From: Klebsormidium nitens
Taxonomy: Eukaryota; Plantae; Klebsormidiophyceae
Assembly: GCA_000708835.1 (NCBI GenBank)
Contig: DF237555.1
Span: 1-53,337 of the forward strand
Direction of reading: 5' to 3'
Length of the DNA: 53,337 bases
Part shown: positions 2,489 through 53,146 of the stretch, piece after piece
Position numbering within the stretch: the first letter of the stretch is position 1
How the letters are laid out: each line of letters starts with the position of its first letter
Notes under the pieces: generated by a model
The model's database searches: none
What the model was told of the DNA's origin: nothing
What the model saw: the letters and a program-made list of their open reading frames with translations, nothing else
Program-made: the position numbers and the translations under genes

Positions 2489-5400
2489 TACATGCACGCG
2501 TACTTGAGATTCAAGTTCTTCTGGAATTAGATTGAGCAGAAATATTTGACGAACAACGATACATGGATGTAGAGTACTTAGGACGGGATCTTAGGTCATG
2601 GGCCAGCTTTACAAGCTTGGTTGGGTAATACATGCATGCTTTAGGTTTGCCAGCTCTTGCGTATCTGGATAGCACCTGAGGATTCCGGCATAGAGTTTTC
2701 CAGAGGATGAGGTTGTTGCACAAGAAGTCATTGCCCTTGGTATTCTTTACTTTTGCATTAGTAGTGGAAGAGTCCGTGGTCAAGTACCACCGTCTGCCAA
2801 GCTTGTCATGGATCGTCATGGATTGGCAGGCCAAGTTGTCGACGTTGAGTTCAACTCGTAGAATCCTTTAGCATGGTAATTTGTTGCTATATCCGCTTGC
2901 TTTTCAGTGATTAGACTGGCCTGCGGTAATGGCCGCCGGCTCCCACAGATGTGCAATGGCTATAAGTGCCCGGAAAGTTTGTATGTATGACAATCCCATC
3001 ATGGTTGACTCGATCTAACTATATATGCATGTCTGCGGGCGGCTCTCCTTCACGTGCGGATCATTCTAAAATTAAGGAACCAAACCCGGCACAACTCTGA
3101 AGCCCACACAAACGTCCGACATTGAAGTAAGTTATTCATGCGCCATCGCATATATGTGAAAAAATAAATTAGAGTCCGTTCGGGACCACTGATCGGATAG
3201 GCCTAGTGGACTGTTCTGATCGATGGTCTACTCTATCTAATTTTTGCTTTTCTTCTCTGCATACTTAGATGAAGGAATCTGGGTATAGCTCCCTGATCTG
3301 AAACATCTAAATAATTGTTTTGAAGTCCTTTTAATGCCATCCAAAAGGAAAAGCTCACATGGAGTGCCGTACGTCCGTATGTCATATAAAATTGTAGGAT
3401 GCACAATCAAAGACGAAATTTGCTCTCCATGAGTCTATAGCTTCCCGGCTATAGTGGGATTACAAAGCTTACACAGTCTGCTCGCTCGATTTAAGCTTTG
3501 CCATCTGCCCGTCTCGACCGCCAATGTATGGGAGCCTACACGAAAGCCTGCTTTATTGAAAGAAAGCATTGCTTGCGGTGCATATTGAAGCTTATCTACC
3601 TAACTCTTCCATCCGTGCCCGTCTAATTTTACTTTCTCAAAGTATGTCTCGATCACATTAATGGAACCCACCAATGCTCTCGAAGGTCCACTATATAGTA
3701 ATGCTAACTGCGCGCGCTCTGTTTGCAGTCTAACGGTAGACCTGCCTGGACTAAGCTACTCTTTGCAGACTCGTGAAATTGACCTGGCAGCTCCATACAT
3801 ACATATGGATCGATACCATAATTAGTAAGAGTTCCGAACATCTAAGCATGTGCAGAGATTTGCTTGATTCCAAAAACAACAATCTACAATAAGAACAACA
3901 CATGCATGATCAATAGACGTTGACTCGCTAGCAAGAAGCCGACTCAAAATCGGAAGTGAGCCTGCGGGCCATGGCTTCTCAAAGTCACTCCTCACCAATA
4001 CGCCGACCGTGCGCCGACCCGAAGCAGCAATCATTCGTAATGAGAATCGGGTATCCCCACGACCAACAAATCTTGACTCGCGCTAGACTCGGCCTTGCAG
4101 TGACCTAATTAAGGTGCTCTAACCTGCTCGAGCTGATGAACTGCTGAATCGCGCTCTAGCTCGGCTACGTGGTACGCGCGGCAGACCAACTGAGATGCGC
4201 CGCCTGGCGGAGCGCTGACGTGGTGCCGACGATAACTAAGCTCAACAATCGAGCAGCCTTCTCCTCGACATGGCTCTCATCCGGAGTCTCGATGCCGCGC
4301 AACACGCTGAGCGCATGCATGCGCAACACTGCTGCTAAACGGCCCTCCTAGGCACCCAAAGATCTCCACCGCTGAGCAGTGGGAGAAACAAGCATAACCA
4401 CGTCGTTGGGGAAGTGGTCGGCCTGTACGTGCCGCCTTAGAAGCCTTTTCTAACACTGGCAGGCTGCGTGACTTGTCTCCACCGCCGACTCCGTTGTAGA
4501 TCTCAAGGCATCGTGGTAGACATGTCTGCAAAGGCGTCCGGAACTCCGAAACTAAAACTGGCCACCAGCCCCGGCCCCCACCTCCTTAGAATGCCCGATT
4601 TTACTTGGGGGTAAATTTGCCCCTACTAAGATGATACCCCCACCAGCGTCCAGCCGCCCCTCAACGAGGGCCAGTTTGCAGAGTTCCGGACGCTCTTGCC
4701 AATGTGATCTGACGTACGATGCCCATTGAAGGATCGAGTCCACCAACGTCATTGAAGCGCAGGACCCCCGGCGGGTCCGCAGCCACCAAGTCCATCACCC
4801 TCGCGGTCTGTCTCTCCCTCTCGCGCTGAGTGGGAATTTGCCACGCGCCTCTCTCCGCATGAGGGCATGAGGCGGCAACAGCTGCATGTGCCAAACATGT
4901 AGCATTGAATCGTTCCGACGTCGGAACCACTAACTTTTTCAGAACGCATCATTGAATCCCGCAGCCACGGCCTCAGAGGGTGGTGATCATTTGGAGGGCT
5001 TCAAGGGACCTCGATTGAAGCGCGCGCCGTCTTCAACAGCAGGTCGGAATTGCATATTGTCGCCATATGCACCATGGCACGATACTACCGGGCGCTAGAT
5101 TCAGCCACTGCCTTTTCCCGATATCGGGACGGACACCTGGCCGGTCACAGATGTGCATGCAACAGGAATATCTTTCAAGATGCATGGGCAATAATTCAAG
5201 GGCGAGGGCCTCGAACTTCCTTCTTGACAGAGTGATTGTGTTACGTGCCATGAATTGTATTAGTAGTATAGTAGGGCATGCACAAGCATGGCAAGATAGT
5301 TCTGCAAGCTTCAGCGAACGATTGGATTCAATTTGCACTGAAGCATCCATTCGACAAGCTATAGTAGTGGCGCATGGTCGATTGCAATTGTCCAAAAGTC

Positions 5401-5724
5401 CGGATGCCAGTGCTCACGTGTGTGATTTCACATGCGCTGCCGGCCTCAATTTAAAAGCCACTTATATCATGCATCCGAATAGAGGAACCTGTACGAGCCA
5501 CACACAATCTGCAATGAGCTTAGGTCGAGTCCAAGGCGCAGGTAAGCAAAGATAGGTCCAAGTCATGTGCTGTATTAAAACTACTCGAGTGTCCGATTTC
5601 TTGTGACGGAAAGTAGCACTCTCTCTTCTCAACGCCACTGACTCACCAGCCTTCTTGTCCTGCTGGGCTAGTTTTCGCAATCTTGGCAGTCCATCCATAC
5701 TGTACATGTGCCTGGCGCTCCTCC

Positions 5725-8089
5725 TCATTCGTCTTGTAGTGCTATCTCAAGAGCAATGTCATCTCGTTCCTGCACATGATGCCAAGGCTCATGCGAATCA
5801 AGAAGGAAGAAACGAACCAGAAGAAGGAACCCGAATGCAAACAATTGAAAACGACGAACAATGGCCGAACGAGCATTCCGGACAACCCAGCGGTAGTTGA
5901 TCATGATCAAATTTTGAAACAAAGCAACGAGGCAGATTTCGGCGAATCAACTTCCGAAACAAAGCAACGAGGCAGATTTCGGCGAAGCAACGAGGCAAAT
6001 GTTGACGACCATGGCTAAGCAGCATCATCCCCTTTCCAAATTCGGCAAAGGAAACATCTGATACTAGCGACCAGGAAGAGGATGCCAAAACTCACGATGG
6101 GACCCCTTGCGAAGTATTTTCCAAATTGCAAATAATACACCTGCAAGGACAGGAACAACATGATGTGCGTTACCTTCAAACCGTGCTTGTAAAGAAAGCT
6201 CGACCGGTTTTGACATTGGAATGAAGCAATCCTGCTACATTGCAGCGACACCAGTAGGTGCTACCGAAGGAAGAAAGGCGGGGTCCGCTGCATGCTTTTG
6301 GCAGCCACGATAGACACATGGTGAAAAGGGTCCCAATCAGCCTTGTGAGCACGCATTGGCCCTTGCACATCGCTGCGTCCTGAAGACCGACATGGTGCAA
6401 TGTGCACGAGCCTGCACAGCGACCGCCGCCGGAGGCAAGGGCCCGGCCCAGGGCACCCCCCCCGTGGGCTCACCTCATCCTCGTCTTGTGTCTCCACTTC
6501 TACGTCGCTGAGGGGGTACGCCACGCACAGCAGCGCGTACCCCTGCACGCACCAGCAGGCCACCGCGTCAGCAATGGGCCCGCGCAGGAGGCACACCCCC
6601 GCAAGGCCGGCCTGCCACCGCTGCGCCCGCGCTCGAGCGGCCTGCCCCGACTGGGCATTGCCATGTTGCCACCACGGCACCCCAGCGCAGGAGGGGCGGC
6701 ATGCCCCCAATGGCCAGAGCGGCTGCGCGTGCATGGCCCACCTGGTGTGGCCCAGGGACCACAAGCAGATTGCAAGCGCCAAAAGCAGGTCTGGGCGGAC
6801 CAAAAGCAATGGCCCGCTGAGAGGCCCCAGAAGGGGGGGGGCAGCACGTGACAGCCCGCAGCGCCATTGTCACTGGGCGAGCTGGGGCGCGCACACCATG
6901 GGGCTTACCTGCGCTTTGAGCTCATTGGAGATGCCGAGGGCCAGAGGCTGGTACAGCTTGCCCGCCTTGACCCGCACCGCACACGCCGTACAGCAACCTG
7001 GGGGAGGCGCAGCGGCAAGCACGTCAGACCCTGCCGGGCCGGTGATCACATGGCAGGTGCAGCAGGGAAGGTGCGCACTCAGTAATCCCCGTGGGCGGGT
7101 TCCCCACGCCCCCCCAGCCTTGCCCAGGAGGCAGACTCGCTCGCCCTCAGGCGGCCCTGGTGGGGCAAGTGGCAAGCAAGCACAGAGCCAGCGATGACAC
7201 AAGGGGACTCACCCATTCTGCAGGCAAAGGGCAGGGTGTGGCCCTGCTCCTCCGCGGAGTGGAGGATGTAGCGGTCCTGCACAAAGGCACGGCGTCAGCA
7301 GCAGCGGGGCCGCAACTGCGGAGCAGTGGCCCGCCCACAAAGCATGCAGTTTCTTGACATCACTGAAAGTACTCAGGGGGCAACATGAGCTCTGAGAACC
7401 AAGTCTTTCTAGCAACCTGCGGGGCCCTCGCTCACATTCACAGACCCTGCCTTCAATCCCATGTAGGGTCAACTGAGACTTGCAAACCGGGGCGACGCCA
7501 TGCGGGGCACCGTCCAGCAGCGAGGCTCGGGCAGCGTGCACCGTGCACCCTGCGCCAGACACACCAGACGCCAATAACCCATGCACAGAGCTCCACGTTC
7601 CTGCCCCGCTGTGGCGCTCGTGTGCGCGTCGGTGGCGGCCCTCACCTCGGGGACGTCCACCTCGAAGGTGCGCCCCGCGGCGCTGTCGTGGATCTTGACG
7701 CGGTGCAGGGGCACCTCCTCCCACTCCTCGTCGTCCCCAATCTCAAAGTCCCCCTCCAGGTACGGGTTCCGGTTTGCAATGTCGCCTTCTTCCACCTGCT
7801 CCACCGCCCACCCCGCCCGGGTGCCTGCCACCGCGGGCAGCCTCCCCACCGGACGGGCCCCCCCGGGCAGCTCATCCCGCAGCGCTGCCCTGCCCCAGTG
7901 GCTGCGCAGAGTCCCCTGGTCAGGGCCAGCGTGCGCCAGGTGGGGAGGGCCGCTGGGACGTGTGGGGGGCAGCTTGAGCGCTGGCCAGGGGAGGGCGCAG
8001 CAATGCTGTGGCAGAGCAGCCCGCACGGGGCGCTGCGGACAGGGAGCCTGCCAGGGCGAACTGACGGCCTGCACCGCGGTGAGGGCCAT
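5725..8089 (-). CDS. FdC2: Plastid ferredoxin C2 (C-terminally extended 2Fe-2S ferredoxin)
   Basis: Exons 8089-7646, 7276-7213, 6997-6909, 6542-6474, 6140-6096, 5769-5725. Transit-like N-terminus (MALTAVQAVSS), then [34 protein letters not shown]...GYALLCVAYPLSDVEVETQDEDEVYYLQFGKYFARGPIERDDIALEIALQDE*. CX4CX2C...C cluster ligands plus the FdC2-type tail are present. Confidence 0.92.
5916..5997. repeat. Intronic tandem repeat, 40-bp period
   Basis: The 31-mer GAAACAAAGCAACGAGGCAGATTTCGGCGAA occurs at 5916-5946 and 5956-5986, with a partial third copy ending at 5997. It lies in the last FdC2 intron. Confidence 0.9.
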
Positions 8090-14486: not shown

Positions 14487-17400
14487 ATGGCTTCCCTGTG
14501 TGGTACAAACAGCTCGGTGAGATGGAAGCCTCCGGTTCTTGACGAGATTGGGGTGGTCTGTCTTTCCTCCCACACCAGCGGGGACAGGAGTGATCTCTCC
14601 CCAGAGTGCTCATGGGATGCTCATCTGCGCGCCGGCACACCTGACGACCTGCCTTCTGGCGACAGTACCGCGTGCTCCTGCTCCGACAGTGACGAGGGCA
14701 TGAGCGACGGCAGCCCCAGGGACTGCCCCTTTGAGCTTCTCCCGGTACAGCGCATGCCCGCCCGCTTCCCCTTGCTGGACCTCACTGGTGCAGCGGCGGG
14801 GTCGCAGGTGTCCGGTTCAGGAGCACAGGGGGCACACCGGGAAGCAGAATGCACAACTGCAGAGGGCAGACAGGGCAGGGACGGCGGCAGCGGCCAGGCT
14901 GGGGAGTGGCTGGGGGGCAGGGAGCAGGAGGGAGAGGCCGCCGGTGCTGCGGCGCCTGATCTGCCCCTCAAGAGCTTGACACTGGGAGATCTTGTGTTTT
15001 TGCGCTTGTTGGGGTCAGGAGCGGTGAGCAGACGCCTCCACATTTGCCGAGGGGGCATGTGCCTGCAGGGTGAAAGAGCCTGATCGAGGTCAGGGGAAGG
15101 GCTCTTGCAACAAGCTCGACAAATGCACCAAGCATTTGGGGCAATCTGTGATGACCCAGGCGTTGCTTAATACCTTTCTGGCTTTCCCGTGCAGTATGGG
15201 AAGGTGTTCCTTGTGGAAGACCGCAGGAGCGGCGCGCGTTACGCCCTCAAACACCTCAGCAAGGCTGTGGCCGTGCAGATTCCCCGCAATCTGATTGGTA
15301 CGGCCTGACTCAGAGCAGCACATTATCCCCATCAACTCAGTCAGCTCTAACTTGAGTGGAGGGCTTTGTTTTGCGTCTCTCTTTACTTGTGCACCCTGCG
15401 TTGTCGTGCGGCACTGTGTCCAGCTGTGGGGAGCAGGGGGAGGGAGAGGCTCTGCTCCTGCGGATGACCTTTTTGAGCCGTGCCCCGCTTGTGCACGGCC
15501 GCCGCGGTGAATGGATCTTGGTTGGACTCCCCGTTTAGCAAAATGTAGCCTGAGACTTGGGCTCAACGGAGCATCTTGACAAACGGAGCAGGGTTCCGTT
15601 GATGCCACAAGGGAGTCCTGCCGGTCTTCGTCTCTGTTGCTGCGGTCCCCTCCTTGCCCCGTCCTGCTCACCGTGTGGCCCCTGTTCCAGACGAGGTGCG
15701 CGCCATGAGTGCCGCCGAGGGCTGCCCCTTCACCGCCCGCTTGCTCAAGACGTTTGTCGACGCCTCTGCGTTCCACCTGCTGCAAGATGCCATCCTGGGG
15801 GGCGAGCTGTTCACTAGGGTCGTCTCCAGTGCCGATGTGAGCAGCTCCTTAGCCGCACTTCACGCCACAGGGGGCTCACCGCCGTGCACCTCTGGTGGAC
15901 TGGCTTCCCTTTTCCAATCATTGCTGGGTAGAGCTGCCCGGGTGGCAGTGCTCGAGCGCTCGGGCTGTCGAAGCCCCCACCCCCTGCCAGTGCTGCCACG
16001 TCCGATGCTCAGCTACAGAATGTGACACTAGCTTCACCAAGAAGCCCCTGGCCGCAGCCCACTGGAGGAAATGAAGCAGACAAACGCGTGCATAAAGATG
16101 CCGGCCTGACTCCTCCTACCAGGCCCAAGTTGGTTTGGAGGAGAATGCGCAAGGACATACGCTTCACTCCGTGCAGGGGCGATTGGACGAGGGGACGGCG
16201 CGCTTCTACCTGGCCTGCGCTGTCACCACCCTGGCCAGCCTGCACACCCGCGGCATCCTGCACCGGTGAGCTGTGCCCCCCGCTGTCCCACCCGACCAGG
16301 AGCAGGCTGTGCCTCGCCGCCGGCGGGGCTGCCGCGGCCCCCGCGTGAAACTGCTGGCTGGTGCTGCCGTCGGGGCTGCGTCTGACGTGCGCATGGTGGG
16401 CCCCCCGTGCGTGCAGGGATGTGAAGCCGGAGAACCTGCTCCTGGCGGCGGACGGCTACCTCACGCTGGTCGACTTTGGCGCCGCCTGCAAGTACGGCCC
16501 CGGCCACGAGGCGCGCACCGTCACCTTCTGCGGCACCGCCGACTACCTGGCGCCCGAGGTACGCCCCCGCCCACAGCCGCACCTCCGCACCTGCCGCTGC
16601 TCTCCCCCTGCGCGTGCTCCCTACCCCGCCTGGGCCCCTCTCTGGCCACGTGTGCTGGGCTGGTGCTCATGATCCTGCCAGCCCGCCTCTTGCGGCGCTG
16701 CACCGGCTCCCCCCTCTCCCCGGGCTGCCCCGTGCTGGCCGCCGTCCCCTGTGCCGCCCCTCCTTGCTGCGCTGCTGACTGTGTGGGGCCGCTCCTGCAG
16801 GTGCTGCTGCAGCGGCTGTACGAGTGGGGCCCCGCTGCGGACTGCTGGGCGCTGGGGGTGACGCTCTTCTTCATGGTCACCGGCCGCCTGCCCTTTGCTG
16901 TGCCGGACGCGAGCCGCACTGTGGGCACCGGCAGCCCGCGCCTCGCGGACCCGCGCTTCAACTTCCCCGCCGACCTCCAGCTGTCGGCGGCGGGGCGGGA
17001 CTTAGTGGGCCGCCTGCTGGAGAGGAACCCCCGAGCACGCCTAGGGGGCGGACCCGCAGGTGAGCGCCACACAATGGCCGGGGCGGGCCTGGGCATCCAC
17101 GGTCGGAGATGCGCTGCCCCCAAAAGGGCGCGTGGGAGACGGGGCCCGAGGCATTGTCTGGCAGCGTACTGTGGCCGCCGTTTGAAGCTGGCCGAGGAGC
17201 TTGTGATGGAGTCGCCGCCAGCCCCGGCAAGCGCAGGGCTGGGATTTGGCGAGGCCGTTCTAGGCACCCCTTTCTTGTTGGTGATTGCGAGTGTGGTTCT
17301 GTGGGCGCAGGTGCCATGGAGATCAAGGCACACCCGTGGTTCGCGGGACTGGACTGGGCAGCCCTGGAGCGCAGAGCTGTCCCCGCCCCGCCCAACCCCG

Positions 17401-17677
17401 GCCGCCGCGCGTCGCTGGACGCCGGCACGCCGGGCAGCGAGGGGGCGACCGCACGGACCGCGACATGCGTGGCCGGGGTGCCGTCCCCCGTGGACCGNNN
17501 NNNNNNNNNNNNNNNNNGGACACGTTCTTCGGGGAGGAGAAGTGGCGCGAGGAAGGCGGCCGCGAGAAGGAGGCCGCGGCGCGCAGGATGGCGGCGCTGA
17601 TGCGGCAGGCAGAGGCGCGCAGGAGAGACGAGGAGGAGAGGGAGAGGGTGTCGCCGCGCAGTGTACGAATACTCTGA
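14487..17677 (+). CDS. AGC-group Ser/Thr protein kinase, divergent PKA/PKG/S6K-like catalytic domain (20-N gap 17498-17517 in last exon)
   Basis: Spliced motifs: LGSGA|YGKV, YALK, IDEVRAM, GGELF, ARFY, LHR|[38 protein letters not shown]|[16 protein letters not shown]. About 165-aa low-complexity N-terminus; start codon uncertain. Confidence 0.85.
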
Positions 17678-19006
17678 TAAGGGGGAGAAGGCCCGCCACC
17701 GACAGTCTGTACAGTAACCGTCTAAGTCTGACTGTAAAGTCGAGTTGACAAATAGAGAGGTCCATTGTCAACGGAACTGCCTAGTAGTGTCATAAAATCG
17801 TCGACAGTCTTGTTGCAGACTGCTTATCCATGGATGAACCATATCGGACCAGACCTGTCCAAATCCTTAGTCCAAATCCTTCTCAGTGCCAATTCGAAGA
17901 ATTATGACACATACCTACTCATGTACATATGCGACGATTGGGAACATGCATGTATCGCACACGCTCATTTGCAGTCGCTATAGCATAGTTCGTCGAATTA
18001 TACGGAGCTAGTAGGCTAGTGCTTCAATACGTTACATCACGGCGCCATATATGCACAAGTGTTGCTCATATGCAGGATGAACGGAATAGATCTGTCTGAA
18101 TTGCGTCTATCATTGCACTGATCATGCATACGTCCAATCAAACTGACATTTAGGCAATTGACCTTGCATGCATGTGCAATTGCGAGTAATTGGCATTTCG
18201 CATGTGCATGGACATACTAACGTACCGGCTGAATCGATCGAACGTTTCCAGTTTATCTTGCGCATGCGCCATGTGCAGACAGTCAACATAATTTTGGATC
18301 TTTTGAATCCGTTTTCCATAGCATTGCAAGTTTTCGGTTTCAACACTTTGCATGTGCGGTCTTGCATGATACTAACCGTATTCAAAGACACTTAATATTT
18401 TATTGATGTAATCATGACACACCGACACTGAATACGATCAAATTTGTCACAAACAACGATCAGTTCGATGAATTGCTCAAGGTTGCAGTTTTGAAACAAC
18501 TGTGGTTGAGTGAACGGTAGGTACTGACGTAAGACACATCGGATCTGTTACAAATCACTGCAATTAATGCGTGCATGGTGCCATTTGCTCAAAACTAAGC
18601 TGTCAAAAACTTTTGTTAAGTAAGCTTCTAACGCTTACTTCGTCGTGACAATGATGCCGTTGAAATCTCAGCACAATCTCCCTGATAACCAGACGCAGAA
18701 ACTTTCCCACCGCAGCCAATTTTGCCAAGGACTGGATGTCGTGTACACTACCTGCATCTCTCCCGCGTGCTTCGAAAGTAACAAGAAAACTCTCTCGACT
18801 ATCAAAGCCGTCCAAGGATGGTTGCGACTCTCGCAAGCGAAAATCGATTGTCATCCAATGACATCCCCTGATTTTACAAGGCTTTTGAGACGGATCACTG
18901 GACTCCTATATTAGGTGCCTGACTCTGACTTTGCATGCAAGGTTGCAAGCTTTGACCTCCGTGTGGACAATGCAAGTGCTTTCCCCGGGCTGCATGTTCC
19001 TCCGCC

Positions 19007-24116: not shown

Positions 24117-28806
<4,690 letters not shown>

Positions 28807-45183: not shown

Positions 45184-48100
45184 GGTCGTTTGAGCTGGAC
45201 GTTCTATGCAAAAGCAGACTCAAAGCAACGGTGGTGGACCTAAGAAGCAATTGTTTTATGTAATCTTCAGAAAGGTCCTTTGCTGTGGCAGACCAAAAAC
45301 ATGTATCGCAGGTGTGCTTAACTTGCAGAGTGGCGGAAGATGTGTATGGTCGACGTGCTGCTCAGCCGAACATGAGGGGATCTTGGCGGAAGCCCTTTCA
45401 GTGCTCGCAACCTTTTTCTGAAACTTAGCACGGCCTGAAAGAGATCTGGGGCTTGCATTCATTGACTGGATGCCAGTCTGCAATGGCGATCCCTTTTGTG
45501 CTCCATATTGCGAGACTGGCCTGAAGCAGTTTGACATGGCAGGTCTGGTTTCTTTAGACTATGCTATGGATGCCAGCTCGAAATAGCTGCTGGTGCGCCC
45601 CTTCTTTGATTTAGGCTCCCCAATTTCGCGGATTGATTACCACATCCCACATTTGCCAGTGTCTTTTGGTGGCACCACGCGTTTTCCAGCTAGTACACGG
45701 TTTTGTTCGCATGCAACACCCGCTAGTGGCATGTGCAAAGTACTTCATCAAGGCAGTGGCATTGCATTCAATGATGATGAAGCAAAGGTCCCATTCTTGA
45801 GCTCAATCTACTATCAGCTTGTTATAATTATGGTATTCGCTTCAAGGCTTATCTTGCTCAATATCAACGTGTATGTGTTCATATACTCAAATGGTGTTCT
45901 CTTTTCAATGTTTGGTTGGCTTAATTTGATTTTCATGTATTTTCTAGACTAGTAGTACACGAATGACTAGCTTCAAAGCGGGTCAAAATGGATGAAAGGT
46001 CTTACTAACTGACTAACACTATAATTAGTTTTGCATCAGGCTTAATTTGCTACGTACTGCTTCAATTCAATTTGTCACGTTGCAAAGCTTCGCTCTACGT
46101 TGGCGGAGTCCAATTTTAGAAACGTGTTCGATTTGCGACTTCCACGCGTACAAGCTCAGATTTCCTCTAGGAGGGCTATAGGCACGAAGACTGAAATTTG
46201 CTTAGGATCCAATCACCTTAAGATCAGGCAAGGCATGATGATCGATGTGACACGCAAATAGGCCGGGTTGCAACAATATGAAGTTGCAAAGCTTGAGATA
46301 TATCATGCAGTGCAAGTGCTAAGGCCATGAACGAACATAACAAACTAATAACTACAGACATTCAATAACGATTCCGTATATTTAATTCTAGCTTAACACT
46401 AAGATTTTCTACTCGCGATATACTCAATATTCAAGTTGTATATATCCGACTCTTGATGTACACAATATCGTTTACATGAAGATTGTATTCGTGGCCCAAC
46501 TGCTTCAATACTTGAAGAGATATCTCTAGCGCGCTAGCAATATATTGCAGGGCTCAGTAAGGGAATGATATATGCATGCAGCCGCCGTACTGACTCGGAG
46601 CATGCAAGTTGCGGAGACTACAAGTTTCATGCACTCGGCGGAGCGTTGCATGCCCGTGATGGCGCTCAGTATTAAAGCTTGGCTCGGGGTTCAATTTATC
46701 GTACAACAACAAGCCGCGGCCTATGAGTGACCACCGCATGCACAGCTAGCCTGAGCGCTGGCATAGTGACATTAGTCATTCATGCCACTGAATCGGATCC
46801 GATCATATAGCTGCGGCCCGGCGCGCGTTCAAGTTAGCTGCATATGCACATAACTGCGAATGAGGAGGCTATGTATCCGAGGGACCAAGGGCTAGTGTCA
46901 GCCGGGTGTCAGCCGTGACCAAGGCGCGGCGCCATATATTTACGTACAAATAGTATGTTACACTTATAGAGCCTGCATCATTGCCAGCTCTTGGACGATC
47001 GATCAAAAATCCGAGCCTTGCCAAGATGCGACATCATGCATTGGCCGGCTCGCATACACTGACTGAGGCTGCATGTGCACTCTTACCTGCTAATTGGAAA
47101 GGCATTAGAGCCGTAGAGCTCGACCGGTTAATTTCCGCGGCCGGCCCGGGCCAGGCTCAGTGGCCGCTCATGCAGCTCTGATTCGATCATGCACCGCGTC
47201 ACTGGGGCCGCGGTGATCGATTAACTATTTGTCTCTTATAAAAATCAAAGATTTCATGCATTGGAAGCGGTATTTCCGCCATGGCTATATATAGCCTCTG
47301 GTACGTTGCTTGATCGAGGACTTTGAACATGACGCGGTGAACTTGAACCGTCTAGCTTGCCGCGCAATTTTTTTTACTAATTATATATAACGGTCTGCGA
47401 AATGTACCTTGATCGATTATAGTCCTATATGCAACTGTTCGATCATATTGTATAAGTTATGTAGCATGTACGCTGCATGGAGTCCATGTTTCAACTTCAC
47501 CTCAGCGCCGGGCCGGCCGAGACCGTTAGAGTACGTCGTCGATCTTGACTACGTATCCAACATGATCGTCGGATCATGCTGCATGTTGTCCGGCGAGTCA
47601 CTGGAGTGGTTTGTGATCGAGTCGAGCTAGCCTCGGAGTCCGATTATTATCTGTTTACAGCTTGTCAAGTTCGGTCCACAATTCGTCCTTGCTGTCAATG
47701 ACATGCAAAAGGTTGCTTGAAAACTATGATCACCAGTGCGCCTGCCAGCAACTACAGTAACCCATTGCATGCATATAGGTGCCACCAAAGTTTTGAAACA
47801 TATACTTTTCGGATCATGTGCCTCCAATATCTTGAAACATATATACTCAACTCATGCAAAGTGAAGTGTTCAGACCGTGTTCCAGGATGACGATCCTTCG
47901 AGATTTTGAAGACAAATATTGAGAAACCATGCTTTACAGAGAATTCCTGCACACCGCGACATGACGCCGTGACAGTCTTATTTAGCAAAGGAATCGATCA
48001 AGTAGGATGAAATCTGCTGTATAATCTCGAGACTAAGATGCGATATCGATTGGATACCATCAATAAAAATATATATATGCTTACAACTTTGCAAAAGCTT

Positions 48101-48389
48101 ACACGAATCTACGTAGAGTGTGTCCGGATGACAAGATTGATTAAGCGGCGTGCTTTGTACACCTCTGGTCGGACTGTTTGCACGCTTACCCCCTAGGTGT
48201 TGCGCAACAAGGCATTGCAGGGGCGGAGCAGACAGTCGTACGGCAAGGACGTGCAGCGCCCATGCGGCGCCACCATCTTTGGTACAAACGCTCCCAGCTC
48301 TCAGGCCCCATGCAGCACAGGCTACTGCAATCTTCTTCCCAGTTGCCTACCTCTTTCGGTATGCGTGCACTCTGGGTAAAGCAGGCCGA

Positions 48390-51300
48390 TCAGACCACCA
48401 GGAGATCTTCGACGTCCTTCTTAAATGGCCCCCGTAGCTTGGCAATGGCGGTGTTCTACAGGACACCATGGGAAGAAATGCGTTGTAACCTCTGCCGGGC
48501 GTTTCTCGCATGACATGAAGGAAGAGCAAAGAGATAACGCGCACGCTTGCGCATATGCGCTCCCAAATCTGAAAGTTTGCAGCGTCATAATGCAACGCGT
48601 GGCAGATTGAAGTCGTCACGTCCCCGGCACAATGTGCTTACCTGCAACTTGGCAACCTTGGCAAAGCGTACGCTGGCGAGCTTCGATGTCTGCATTCAGA
48701 TGGAAAAATCAACATCAGTGCTCCCGTCTCTCAACACGGATGCGCAAGGTCGGGATTGCTGCGAGTGGCGCACAGTCCGCATGCAAGCACGCCCTTGGCC
48801 TGTATTGCCCGGCCGCATGTTCAAGCCCCCGGCTGGGCGCGGCGCCTAAAACCGTACCTGGGCCAGGTTGTGCACGGGCTGCCCGCGCAGGCCCAGCCGC
48901 AGCTCCAGCACGCGCGCCTCCTCCGCCTCCAGCTTGCACAGCAGCCGCTCGATGTCGTGCGGCGCGCCCTCCTGCGCCAGCATCTGCACACACCCACGGG
49001 GGCGCTCGATCATCCGGAGTCGCCCGAGCGCCCTGAGCCGCCGAGCCTCTCATCTCTGCACCCACTCACTTTCCTGCCACTCATACAGCAAGCAGGACCT
49101 CTTTTCATCACGGGATCATGCGTGCAGCAGCGCGGTGGGGCTGACCTCGTAGGGGTCCTTGTGGCAGTCGGGGTCGGCCAGCTTGTCGGCCCAGTCCGCC
49201 ACGCGCTCCCCGCTGGCCAGGCTGCGCTGCAGCAGCGCGGGGCCACCGCTCTCCAGGGAAACCACCTCCTGCGACGCCGCCAGCAGCAGGCGCACCGCGC
49301 CCTCGCTCAGCCGCACCGCCGCCGCGGTCTCCGCCAACGTCGCAGGCCGGCCCAGCTGCACCAGCAGCAGCTGCAGCAGAGGGGAGAGTGTGTGTGGGGG
49401 GAGGGTCGAACGGCGAGACCGGTTCGAAGAGGCGGGGGTAAGTCGACCGGGAAGGCAAAGAGCATGCGAAGGCAGAGTGGGTCAGGAAGACGGGCAGAAG
49501 TCACCAGGGAGGCCGCTGCGGAGAGGACTCCACGAGGACCAGGGAGGGGAGCAAGGGGACGGGCGGGGCGGGCCTCACTGCTCGGGCCTTGGCGATCTTG
49601 CTGAGGCGGTCCCAGGCGTACGCGGGCAGGCGCACCAGCCGGCTGTCCTGCCGAATGGTCGCCTGGATGCTCTGCACGGCAGCAAGGCGGGCCGTCAGAA
49701 GGCAACGGCCAGGAGCATGCGCCCCGGCCCGGGAAGCGGCCATAGCCCTCGGGGCTGTGACGCGGTTGAGACCAAGAAGAGGGAGGACTCCGCTATCTTA
49801 CAAACCAAGAAACACGTTCCTGGCATAAATGCCACAAAGGGCAAAACCATTGAGACGGTTCAGGTCCACCAATTTAACTGGCTCATCGTGGATTAAAATT
49901 CATTACAGCACTTTTCTCATGAAAACACAACATGGCGAGAGCAACGCAAGTGAGGCTGATTGCTCGGAAAGCCTTTCCCACTTGAGATCCGTGCGACAAT
50001 GAGCTGTAGAGGGGACACCACTCAAAAGCCGTGTGAAAGCAACGAAGTGCTCAGCCACCCTCAGGCGTGCCTTCCTGTGCACACGAGGGCGGCAGCAGGC
50101 GTACCAGGATCTTTGACGAGAAATCCGCGACCATCTTCAAGGCACTCTCTTGCGCTACACATCCATCATGCAAGTCGGGCAGCGCGTGGCGCGGGGCTGA
50201 CCTGGCGGATCCAGTAGGTGGCGTACGTGCTGAAGCGGAAGCCGCGGCGCACGTCGTAGCGGTCGACGGCCTTGAGGAGGCCCACGATGCCCGCCTGCAC
50301 CAGGTCCTCCAGGTCAAGGCCGACGCGCGGGAACGACTGCGCCACCGACACCGCGAGGCGCAGGTTGCCCTCCACCAGCCGGCACTTGGCCGCCACGCCC
50401 TGCTCCACCCTGCAGCAGCGCACCCGCAGCGTCAGCCGGCACGCGAGGGGGGGCCGCACAGCGGAGGAGCAACCAGCGGTACAGCATGCACCGGCAAGGC
50501 GGACGCAGAGGGCAGGCATCAGCGGGGCCCAAAGGGAACAGCACAGGCGAGAGGGAGTCGCGCGTTCAATCTCCAAACAACTATGATTTCCACTTATGCG
50601 CCTGGACCTTGTGACAGGTCCTTCGTAATACATGCAATCATCCAAACGCACACCCACTGTCCACTGCGACTTTTGGAGTGGCACGTGTCTAGTTGCAGGA
50701 AAGAGCAGCATGGAGCCCGGAGAGACAGGCGGGGGTCTGCACCTTCGCCGCAGTTCTCCAACGGAGCTCAGCTCTGAAGCCTCGCTCCACTCCTCGTCAC
50801 TGGGGGAGCGCTGTAATCGAACTTCTAATTCATCTCGGACTGCACGGAGGGCGTGGTATGCCTGCAGATTGAAAACCCTTCGTAAGCGGAGATACAGTGC
50901 GTCTATACAAATGTAGGGACTTCAGATGCAACAGTGCCATAAAGTACTCTTCCGGCCACAGATTTGTCTCCACGACGGCCTTCATTTACAGCTGTTTGTA
51001 TCAAACTTGCCCATTGGGTTCCCTCCTCTCCCAAGCAAAGTTCCTGATCTCAAATGTTTGCTGCCTTCCTTGTCGTTGATCATACGATCCAAGATCAGGA
51101 AACATGCTTACAGCATTTTTAACCCGATGGCAGTTTTGATGCAGAGAATGTACATGCACCCCCTGCGCCCGAGGAGGGGCCCTCACCAGAACCCTGCGGC
51201 TGAACTTCTTCTCCTGCGGCAGCGTGAGCCGTGGGTAGCACGCCAGCAGCAGGTGCAGGTGCGTCGCAGTGCCCGTCTGGTCCGCCCCATCGCGCCGCGC

Positions 51301-52193
51301 CGCCGCCTCCGCGCTCCGCTCGTACTGGCGCGCCCTCTCCTGCAGCAGCTCGCGCAGCCGGGCGGTGGAGGCCTGCTGGCGCCGCACGCGCCTCTGGACC
51401 AAGGTCTGCGTGGCGGGAGCTGCTGCCGCCACCAGGGCCTGGACCTGCGGGGCTCACGAGGATGAGCGGCAGAGCTAGCAGCAGAGGGAGAACGAGCAGC
51501 ATTATCAGCGTATCAGGAATTTGTTGGGTTGAGAGCCGAGGCTCCGGAGCAAGCCAGTCGTTCCATCAATCTGGTTGGTCGATCTGGTGCACACAAAGGC
51601 CTAGTACGGCTCATACCAATTTGAGAAGTCGTCCCACAATTGTGCAAGTTCAAGATGAGTGCGCTGCTCAAGCATTGGGATGAAGTGGCAGAATGGCAGG
51701 AGGGCCCCTTCACCTTCTCTGAGGGTGCTGCGGGTGCTGCAACCACCGAGACCCGCCCGTTCCGGATGCGCACCAGCCGGTCCCCCAGGCGCACTGTGCC
51801 ATCCTGCCAGACGGTGTCCCGGTGCTCCCCCCGCCGCACCCATTCCTTGTACACCGCCATTGTAGCCGCCTCTGACCCCGTCACCTCAGCGCACTTGCTG
51901 CGCTCCTCCAAGGGAGGCTGGCGGCTGACCAGCGGTTCTACCCGGCGGCGCTGTGCGGGCTGCCTTCCAGCTGCCGCATGCCGCCAGTCAACGACCTCTG
52001 CGGGCAGCGGGGGCGGCCCTGTAGGGACACCCCCGTGCCCAGAGCTGCGCAACGCCTCCCCTGACTGCGTGCCTACTGCGTGAAGGCAGCACACACGGAT
52101 ACCACCTGGTGCGCACTTGCTTGGTGAACACGGGTGTGCCGTCTTACGTAAGTAACATGAATTGTCAAGACTTGATATTTGGGCGCTAGCCAT
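48390..52193 (-). CDS. Nucleus-encoded plastid-type RNA polymerase sigma70-family factor (9 exons)
   Basis: Transit-like MASAQISS. Region 1.2 YPRLTLPQEKKFSRRVL; LQRSPSDEEWSEAS; region 2 LVEGNLRLAVSVAQ...DLEDLVQAGIVGLLKAVDRYDVRRGFRFSTYATYWIRQ|SIQATIRQDSRLVRLP; region 3 LGRPATLAETA; region 4 LEAEEARVLELRLGL...NLAQ|TSKLASVRFAKVAKLQ|NTAIAKLR...LLVV*. Last exons 48689-48642 and 48455-48390. Confidence 0.88.
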
Positions 52194-53146
52194 CACAGAC
52201 ATATCCTAGTATGTGTGTAGCAAGGACCATCGGGAGTCCAATTGAGGTCAGGCACAGCTTCGCCCCTCCAGCCAGGACCTGCTCACATGCAGCATGCCAC
52301 ACCAAGCCCAACCAGGATGAGAAGAGAAGAAGAGCACAAAAAGACCGTGGTCAAAATCCAGATACAAGAGATTCTGTCATCTATTCAAGAGGGAGACCTC
52401 AAAGTGACACATGCCCCTTCTAGCTGCAAGACCTTGCAACAGCTTTTCGAGCAGAATCCGGCAACTTGCAAGCTGCCTTGCTTGATCGCAAAAGAAAAGT
52501 TGCAAGCCCCACTCAGGCACGGCTTTTATTCTGGGGTCTGCAAGAAGATCTCCTGGACAGCGTCAAGGTCTTGAGATATGTCACACCCAAGCCACACCAC
52601 CAGCATCAGGCAAAGCTGCAGGCTCTCTGCCGCACCGCCCCTTTCAAATTCTAGGCTACCTACGTTGCGCCAAACTTGAAATGGGGGTTCACACTCTTTG
52701 TGCGCGCTTTTACTACGGTATGGTATTAGGACCTGCATCTAAATAAATTTAAAATTTCGACACTCGAGAATGACGCTTCCACGTCAGAACAGCATGGTTT
52801 CCCACGAAGTTTTCTCCCGGCCGGCCAGCTATTGGCGTCCCCCCAGTTCTGTGGGCTCGGTAGTAGAGATTTGGCTCTACCGGCCGGCTGGCCCCGCCAA
52901 GCACCTGCATTTGCTGCCGCCTAGGCAGCCGGCGGGGTGCCTTCGGTACCGGTCGGGGTCCCTGCTCGGCCGGCCTTGTCCTGGTTCTCCTGCAGCCGGC
53001 TGTGGAACCCCTGCAGAACAGGTTAGCGTTTGGATGGTGTGTGTCAAAAAGAAGGCATAAATATTTACCCCGAAAACTTGGGTATTTGGGTTGGGTAAAT
53101 TGGCTGCTCGAATGACGTCATCTTTGCTTTGCACGAATGAAAGGAA

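Follow-up and report, generated by a model that had tools for sequence, protein, structure and literature searches.

The window analysed here, a stretch of 53,337 nucleotides from Klebsormidium nitens, carries on its minus strand a sigma factor gene of nine exons and 543 codons, which runs from about 52686 to 47920 according to three-frame translation and peptide mapping (Table 1). All introns begin with GT and end with AG, giving eight junctions, and the start ATG at 52200-52202 is preceded by an in-frame stop. Exon 4 ends in ...YATYWIRQ at 50202, exon 5 opens with SIQAT at 49671, exon 7 ends in ...VHNLAQ, exon 8 encodes the 16 residues TSKLASVRFAKVAKLQ, and exon 9 begins with NTAIAKLRGPF... 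at 48455 and reaches its stop codon at 48390-48392. The stretch 48390-50240, which a sequence-only reading had flagged as a plastid-type sigma factor with a rewritten -35 recognition helix, does lie within this gene but is only its 3' part, as the gene reaches 52686. The exons and GT-AG introns are as that reading quoted them, including the RFAKVAKLQ helix in the spliced region 4.2, and all junctions recur in the transcript contigs of four studies. It had proposed micro-exons of 48 and 66 nt; the former is correct, while the 66 nt are only the coding part of a terminal exon that, with its 3' UTR, measures about 530 nt.

Table 1. Features of the sigma factor gene in the window, with the divided exon 4 of its distant orthologues (positions of the latter refer to the respective contigs).
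Feature	Position	Strand	Content	Evidence
Exon 1	51712..52686	-	about 484 nt of 5' UTR and codons 1-163	contig pieces in four runs
Conserved N-terminal block	51747..51872	-	residues about 111-152, WVRRGEHRD...LVRI..G.V	invariant columns in alignment of four taxa
Exon 2	51186..51442	-	linker and diverged region 1.2 (...RLTLPQEKKFSRRVL)	junctions in spliced contigs; conserved in orthologues
Exon 3	50742..50860	-	cyanobacterial-type linker, regions 1.2 to 2.1	cyanobacterial SigA matches in PDB
Exon 4	50202..50408	-	regions 2.1-2.4 up to the Q437 equivalent	Pfam Sigma70_r2
Exon 5	49579..49671	-	end of region 2.4 and region 3.0 (SIQAT...RLPAYAWDRLSKI)	TIGR02997
Exon 6	49146..49370	-	regions 3.1-3.2	marginal Pfam Sigma70_r3; SigA region 3 profile match
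Exon 7	48858..48983	-	region 4.1 and first helix of the 4.2 helix-turn-helix	TIGR02997; Thermus aquaticus sigma-A domain 4
Exon 8	48642..48689	-	48-nt micro-exon: turn and region 4.2 recognition helix, sigma70 positions 576-591	junctions in four runs
Exon 9	47920..48455	-	last 21 codons: end of 4.2 (..AIAKLR..) and C-terminal tail; about 470 nt of 3' UTR	contigs
Split exon 4, L002	4874-4984 / 5364-5459			
Split exon 4, L003	6045-6155 / 6477-6572			
Split exon 4, L005	6047-6157 / 6485-6580			

Elsewhere in the window, a CDC48/p97-type AAA ATPase is represented by a long exon at 25723-26601 on the plus strand (Pfam AAA, E 1e-48), and an open frame at 16273-17745, also on the plus strand, gives a weak protein kinase match. 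The segment 22001-23000 has a G+C content of only 23%, with 37-71% in the rest of the window. Within the sigma gene the last two coding exons (48393-48689) have a G+C content of 0.43-0.60, against mostly 0.66-0.76 in the other exons, and the same is seen in every taxon, that is, in the window and in the orthologous loci L001-L005 described below.

The gene is expressed and spliced as predicted. A run search detected the flagged stretch in 20 runs from 7 studies, with a share of 0.3-0.5 of its words present in each, as expected for spliced RNA. Contigs on 48000-52700 from four runs, each of a different study, contain all eight junctions at the exact predicted positions in every run without a single mismatch. 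The whole mRNA is spanned by each of two contigs of about 2.6 kb, and contigs covering exon 9 extend 73-83 nt beyond 48000. The transcripts use exactly the proposed exons. No alternative exon was seen in the contigs of these four runs, among them none encoding a canonical RERVRQ, and the canonical 4.2 motif is absent from all six frames of the whole window. A frameshift origin of the recognition helix was considered and rejected, as the other two frames of exon 8, read by eye, encode nothing canonical. That the locus is a pseudogene or an unexpressed gene can likewise be rejected, given the spliced contigs in four runs and the purifying selection described below.

Unspliced intron 5 (49645-50231) and unspliced intron 8 (48430-48654) occur only in low-depth contigs, at a depth of 4-7 compared with 67-320, which suggests minor intron retention or pre-mRNA. 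The 48-nt length of exon 8 (48642-48689) is a multiple of three, so that its skipping would delete the recognition helix in frame; no exon 8-skipping joint was found in the four runs, although contigs drop rare forms.

Comparisons with family models, run one exon at a time, support the assignment of the predicted protein as an intact, expressed sigma70-family factor of the cyanobacterial/plastid type (group 1/2). Exon 4 matches the Pfam model Sigma70_r2 (PF04542) with 60.3 bits and an E-value of 1.5e-16, and aligns to residues 374-437 of E. coli sigma70. On the NCBIfam model TIGR02997 for cyanobacterial RpoD/SigA, which has 298 positions, exons 4-7 are collinear, with exon 4 covering positions 70-137, exon 5 139-166, exon 6 172-209 and exon 7 236-274 (E 6e-4 for the last), and no single exon comes near the whole-protein cut-off of this model. 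The placement of exon 7 agrees with its alignment to domain 4 of Thermus aquaticus sigma-A. Region 4 (PF04545) is spread over three exons that were compared separately. Exon 7 gave a match of its own, and the 24 model positions remaining after 274 correspond to the 16 residues of exon 8 plus the first 8 residues of exon 9, up to KLR. As 16 and 8 residues fill the 24 positions without a gap, the gapless alignment of region 4.2 to the sigma70 consensus, claimed by the sequence-only reading, is anchored on both sides.

The remaining exons are more diverged. Exon 6 alone reaches 23.9 bits against Pfam Sigma70_r3 (PF04539), for which the cut-off is 25.3, and a profile built from its orthologues matches SigA region 3 in the PDB (E 0.0075). 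Exon 3 matches only three cyanobacterial SigA chains in the PDB (E 0.026-0.11), which supports the label plastid-type, and it also matches the models of cyanobacterial SigD and SigC. For region 1.2 (PF00140), exon 2 gave no Pfam match; its likeness to this region was recognised by eye only and is conserved in the orthologues. The N-terminal extension consists of a poorly conserved leader followed by two blocks that are invariant in four taxa, VDWR.AAA.RQP.QR and WVRRGEHRD.VW..G.V.LGD.LVRI..G.V. Residues 1-60 are poorly conserved and, with much S, A and G and only two acidic residues, have a composition that hints at a putative plastid transit peptide. The conserved N-terminal block found no match in Pfam, NCBIfam or Atlas; its structure model, a helix and three strands, is of low confidence (pLDDT about 50-69), and a fold search with it gave no match (best Z 3.6).

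The alignment of exon 4 allows the residues to be numbered as in E. coli sigma70. In regions 2.2-2.4, the equivalents of Q406, F427, T429, Y430, W434, R436 and Q437 are unchanged and conservative changes are found at Y425 (to F) and W433 (to Y); positions 425, 430, 433, 434, 436 and 437 among these are equivalents of the DNA-melting residues. Altered are E407 (to A), N409 (to I), T440 (to Q) and R441 (to A), and in region 3.0 H455 is replaced by Y and E458 by D. The core-binding regions 2.1-2.2 had been described as well conserved from the sequence alone; region 2.2, however, is not fully canonical owing to the replacements at 407 and 409. The altered -10 determinants Q/A must also be seen separately. 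In a set of 259 sigmas gathered by their similarity in region 2, 224 have R at position 441, so that its loss is indeed unusual, whereas position 440 varies (T in 69, Q in 29) and the change found there is an ordinary one. At position 433, 228 sigmas of this set have W and 20 have Y.

In region 4.2, the equivalents of L573, V582, A594, K597, L598 and R599 are unchanged, I587, I590 and L595 are conservatively replaced by V, L and I, and the altered positions are G577 (to S), R584 (to F), E585 (to A), R586 (to K), R588 (to A) and Q589 (to K). The residues of sigma70 that read the -35 element TTGACA are R584, E585, R588 and Q589. With F, A, A and K at these positions, the canonical -35 readers are lost in the window gene. 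The recognition helix keeps its hydrophobic core and carries a net positive charge, being more basic than usual. Considering how general R441 and how variable position 440 is among the 259 sigmas, what sets this protein apart is that R441 is missing and that all of the -35 readers are replaced, rather than the change of T440.

Relatives of the gene came from a word search in which the query was the open frame surrounding exon 6; it returned four short ORF products whose contigs were then examined as loci. These come from a Logan genomic assembly (L001, 96% identity in exon 6), an ENA assembly (L002, 80%) and two JGI metagenomes (L003/L004 and L005/L006, 64%). Exon-by-exon tblastn showed that the orthologues share the exon order and the AG|..|GT flanks of the window gene. 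The micro-exon with these flanks is present in L001, L002, L003 and L005, and the stop codon and C-terminal tail are conserved in L001, L003 and L005. The peptide encoded by exon 8 reads TSKRASVRFSKVAKLQ in L001, TSKRASVPFGKVAKLE in L002 and TSRRASIPYARVANIQ in L003/L005. The recognition helix is therefore non-canonical in every orthologue, with F or Y at 584, A, S or G at 585, K or R at 586, A at 588 and K or N at 589. Position 441 reads A, A, Y and L in the window, L001, L002 and L003/L005, respectively, and the Q at position 440 is invariant across the window gene and its orthologues.

Other searches brought no further relatives. An exhaustive representative search with exon 4 contained no orthologue among its best 150 matches, which consisted of bacterial sigmas and chimeric duplicates; the 251-residue open frame around exon 4, compared by words with proteins of 138-439 residues, gave bacterial matches only, and the annotated protein of this alga was not among them; neither the exhaustive search nor the word searches returned a sigma of a plant; and metagenome scans with the alignments of exons 5 and 6 gave no match. 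An additional intron divides exon 4 of the more distant orthologues between ...EDL(V/I) and QAGIV..., while this exon is a single exon in the window and L001, which implies that this intron was gained or lost within the group. The copies in L003 and L005 are closely related (dS 0.14, omega 0.025) and may represent haplotypes, separate but close species, or recent paralogues. An adenylate kinase gene lies downstream of the sigma gene in both, and a synteny check found no counterpart of it in the window.

Purifying selection acts on the gene, and the rewritten helix is no exception. Omega, calculated from Nei-Gojobori counts summed over exons 2-9, is 0.15 for the window against L001, 0.20 against L002 and 0.25 against L003, and 0.025 between L003 and L005. 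In two independent close pairs, the two exons encoding region 4.2 have 14 synonymous and 4 nonsynonymous changes (pN/pS 0.09, binomial p 2.6e-6). Constraint differs along the protein, however. At the deepest comparison, 29/32 residues are kept in exon 4b and 28/31 in exon 5 but only 8/16 in the helix exon, the lowest share of all exons; exon 5 is 87-94% identical to the window exon across the orthologues. As judged from these alignments, regions 2.2-2.4 and 3.0 are nearly invariant among the relatives. In ordinary sigmas, the recognition helix ranks among the best conserved parts. The sequence-only reading had named a canonical exon used in the cDNA, or a silent or neutrally evolving gene, as grounds for giving it up. 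Since the cDNA contains the proposed exons and selection is purifying, neither of these two grounds applies. The orthologues from four algal sources all retain the exon structure and a non-canonical helix.

The pattern can best be explained by a working plastid sigma factor that initiates from -10 or extended -10 promoters without reading a -35 sequence, a proposal to which we give an even chance. It is favoured because constraint is strongest on core binding, -10 melting and region 3.0, while the helix has no canonical base reader. The nuclear-encoded sigma would presumably enter the chloroplast and work there with the plastid-encoded RNA polymerase, and we infer both the import and the polymerase binding. 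Regions 2.2-2.4 and 3.0 would bind the core, melt the -10 element and touch the extended -10, and domain 4 may have been kept for docking to the beta flap and for unspecific contact with DNA. The promoters used by such a sigma would be of the -10/extended -10 type. Promoters that lack a -35 box are common in plastids. In barley, plastid start sites have a -10 element in 89% and a -35 element in 70% of cases (PMC3933795), and the psbD promoters of Chlamydomonas and of cereals also belong to this kind (PMC5508017). Two observations count against initiation from the -10 region only: the polar residues E407 and N409 of the core-binding helix are replaced by A and I, and the purifying selection on the helix exon, together with the aromatic residue at 584 and the basic one at 586, may reflect recognition of another upstream element.

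The conservation of F/Y584 and K/R586 is the reason why two other modes of upstream recognition have to be kept as rivals. A remodelled helix that reads a new upstream element through the aromatic residue at 584, the basic residue at 586 and K/N at 589, and thereby defines a lineage-specific promoter class, is possible but unlikely. It would account for the purifying selection on the helix exon, for the conservation in four taxa of F/Y584, K/R586, V587 and A588 with the flanking T576, S577, A580 and S581, and for a helix without any acidic residue in three of the four taxa. The same exon is the most variable one, however, with half of its residues changed at the deepest comparison, and positions 579, 583, 585, 589 and 591 differ even among close relatives, although a surface that reads bases would not usually vary in this way; moreover, A588 deletes a major contact instead of substituting one. 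Upstream recognition could also have been handed to a partner, with domain 4 or the N-terminal block docking a DNA-binding protein or itself contacting DNA. The conserved N-terminal block in exon 1 without a known family would fit this idea, and precedents for the involvement of further proteins exist: in Chlamydomonas, PEPS1, a subunit with a SAP domain, binds to DNA of promoters and has been proposed to assist promoter recruitment (bioRxiv 10.64898/2026.06.23.732312), and the psbD light-responsive promoter needs an upstream AAG-box factor (PMC5508017). As no partner is known and the N-terminal model is of low confidence and without a fold match, we consider this improbable. A separate, undescribed Klebsormidiophyceae sigma clade that would combine the absence of direct -35 reading and strong -10/extended -10 contacts with either a re-specified basic helix or the N-terminal block as an extra contact to DNA or a partner is, as a whole, rather unlikely.

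Two further explanations are less probable still. The suggestion of the sequence-only reading that the protein acts as a competitive decoy, which binds the core polymerase without forming productive promoter complexes, agrees with the missing -35 contacts and the variable equivalent of R441. It fits poorly with the near-invariant DNA-melting residues and region 3.0, parts that a decoy would not need, and the alteration of two core-binding residues is the opposite of what a strong competitor requires, which makes a decoy very improbable. Nearly as little probability can be given to an ordinary orthologue of a described plant clade such as SIG5, in which region 4.2 has merely drifted and promoter use is unchanged. 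SIG5 orthologues are stated to exist in K. flaccidum, and SIG5 serves a -35-independent promoter (PMC5508017), but here all four base readers are replaced, the replacement is conserved, and the single sigma factor of Chlamydomonas keeps ...VTRERIRQIEAKALRKLR, as its published gene shows (bioRxiv 10.64898/2026.06.23.732312).

No description of Klebsormidium sigma factors was found in the papers examined; in the 18 papers searched that mention both Klebsormidium and a sigma factor, neither term stands in the title or abstract. A conserved and expressed sigma factor without -35 readers but with intact -10 functions would amount to a natural experiment in how promoters lacking a -35 element are served in plastids, and it would offer a defined protein on which helix swaps and in vitro assays could be carried out. 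Klebsormidium stands near the base of the land-plant lineage, where the single algal sigma expanded into a family. If this gene fell into a clade that bryophytes share, it would bear on the division of tasks among sigma factors before land plants arose.

Weak or dispensable reading of the -35 element is a feature of the primary sigmas of Helicobacter and Campylobacter and of E. coli sigma70 at extended -10 promoters, where the -10 and extended -10 elements carry recognition. These belong to unrelated bacterial lineages, and the likeness is one of analogy only. Arabidopsis SIG5 at the psbD light-responsive promoter likewise works at a promoter with a dispensable -35 element (PMC5508017); there, however, the independence comes from the upstream AAG box and its factor and not from a known loss of the -35 readers of SIG5 itself. 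With cyanobacterial SigA and group 2 sigmas (TIGR02997), the Klebsormidium protein shares the order of exons 4-7 on the model and a linker between regions 1.2 and 2.1, encoded by exon 3, that matches only SigA structures in the PDB, whereas it deviates from the consensus of the family in its recognition helix and at position 441. Chlamydomonas RPOD1 and land-plant SIG1-SIG6 resemble it in being encoded by nuclear genes with introns, in having an N-terminal extension and in the cyanobacterial-type order of regions 1.2, 2, 3 and 4, and their presumed common partner is the plastid-encoded polymerase. The SIGs of Arabidopsis keep most of the canonical recognition helix. In contrast to Chlamydomonas RPOD1, which keeps the canonical TRERIRQIE (bioRxiv 10.64898/2026.06.23.732312), the Klebsormidium protein has F, A, K, A and K at positions 584, 585, 586, 588 and 589 and no R441.
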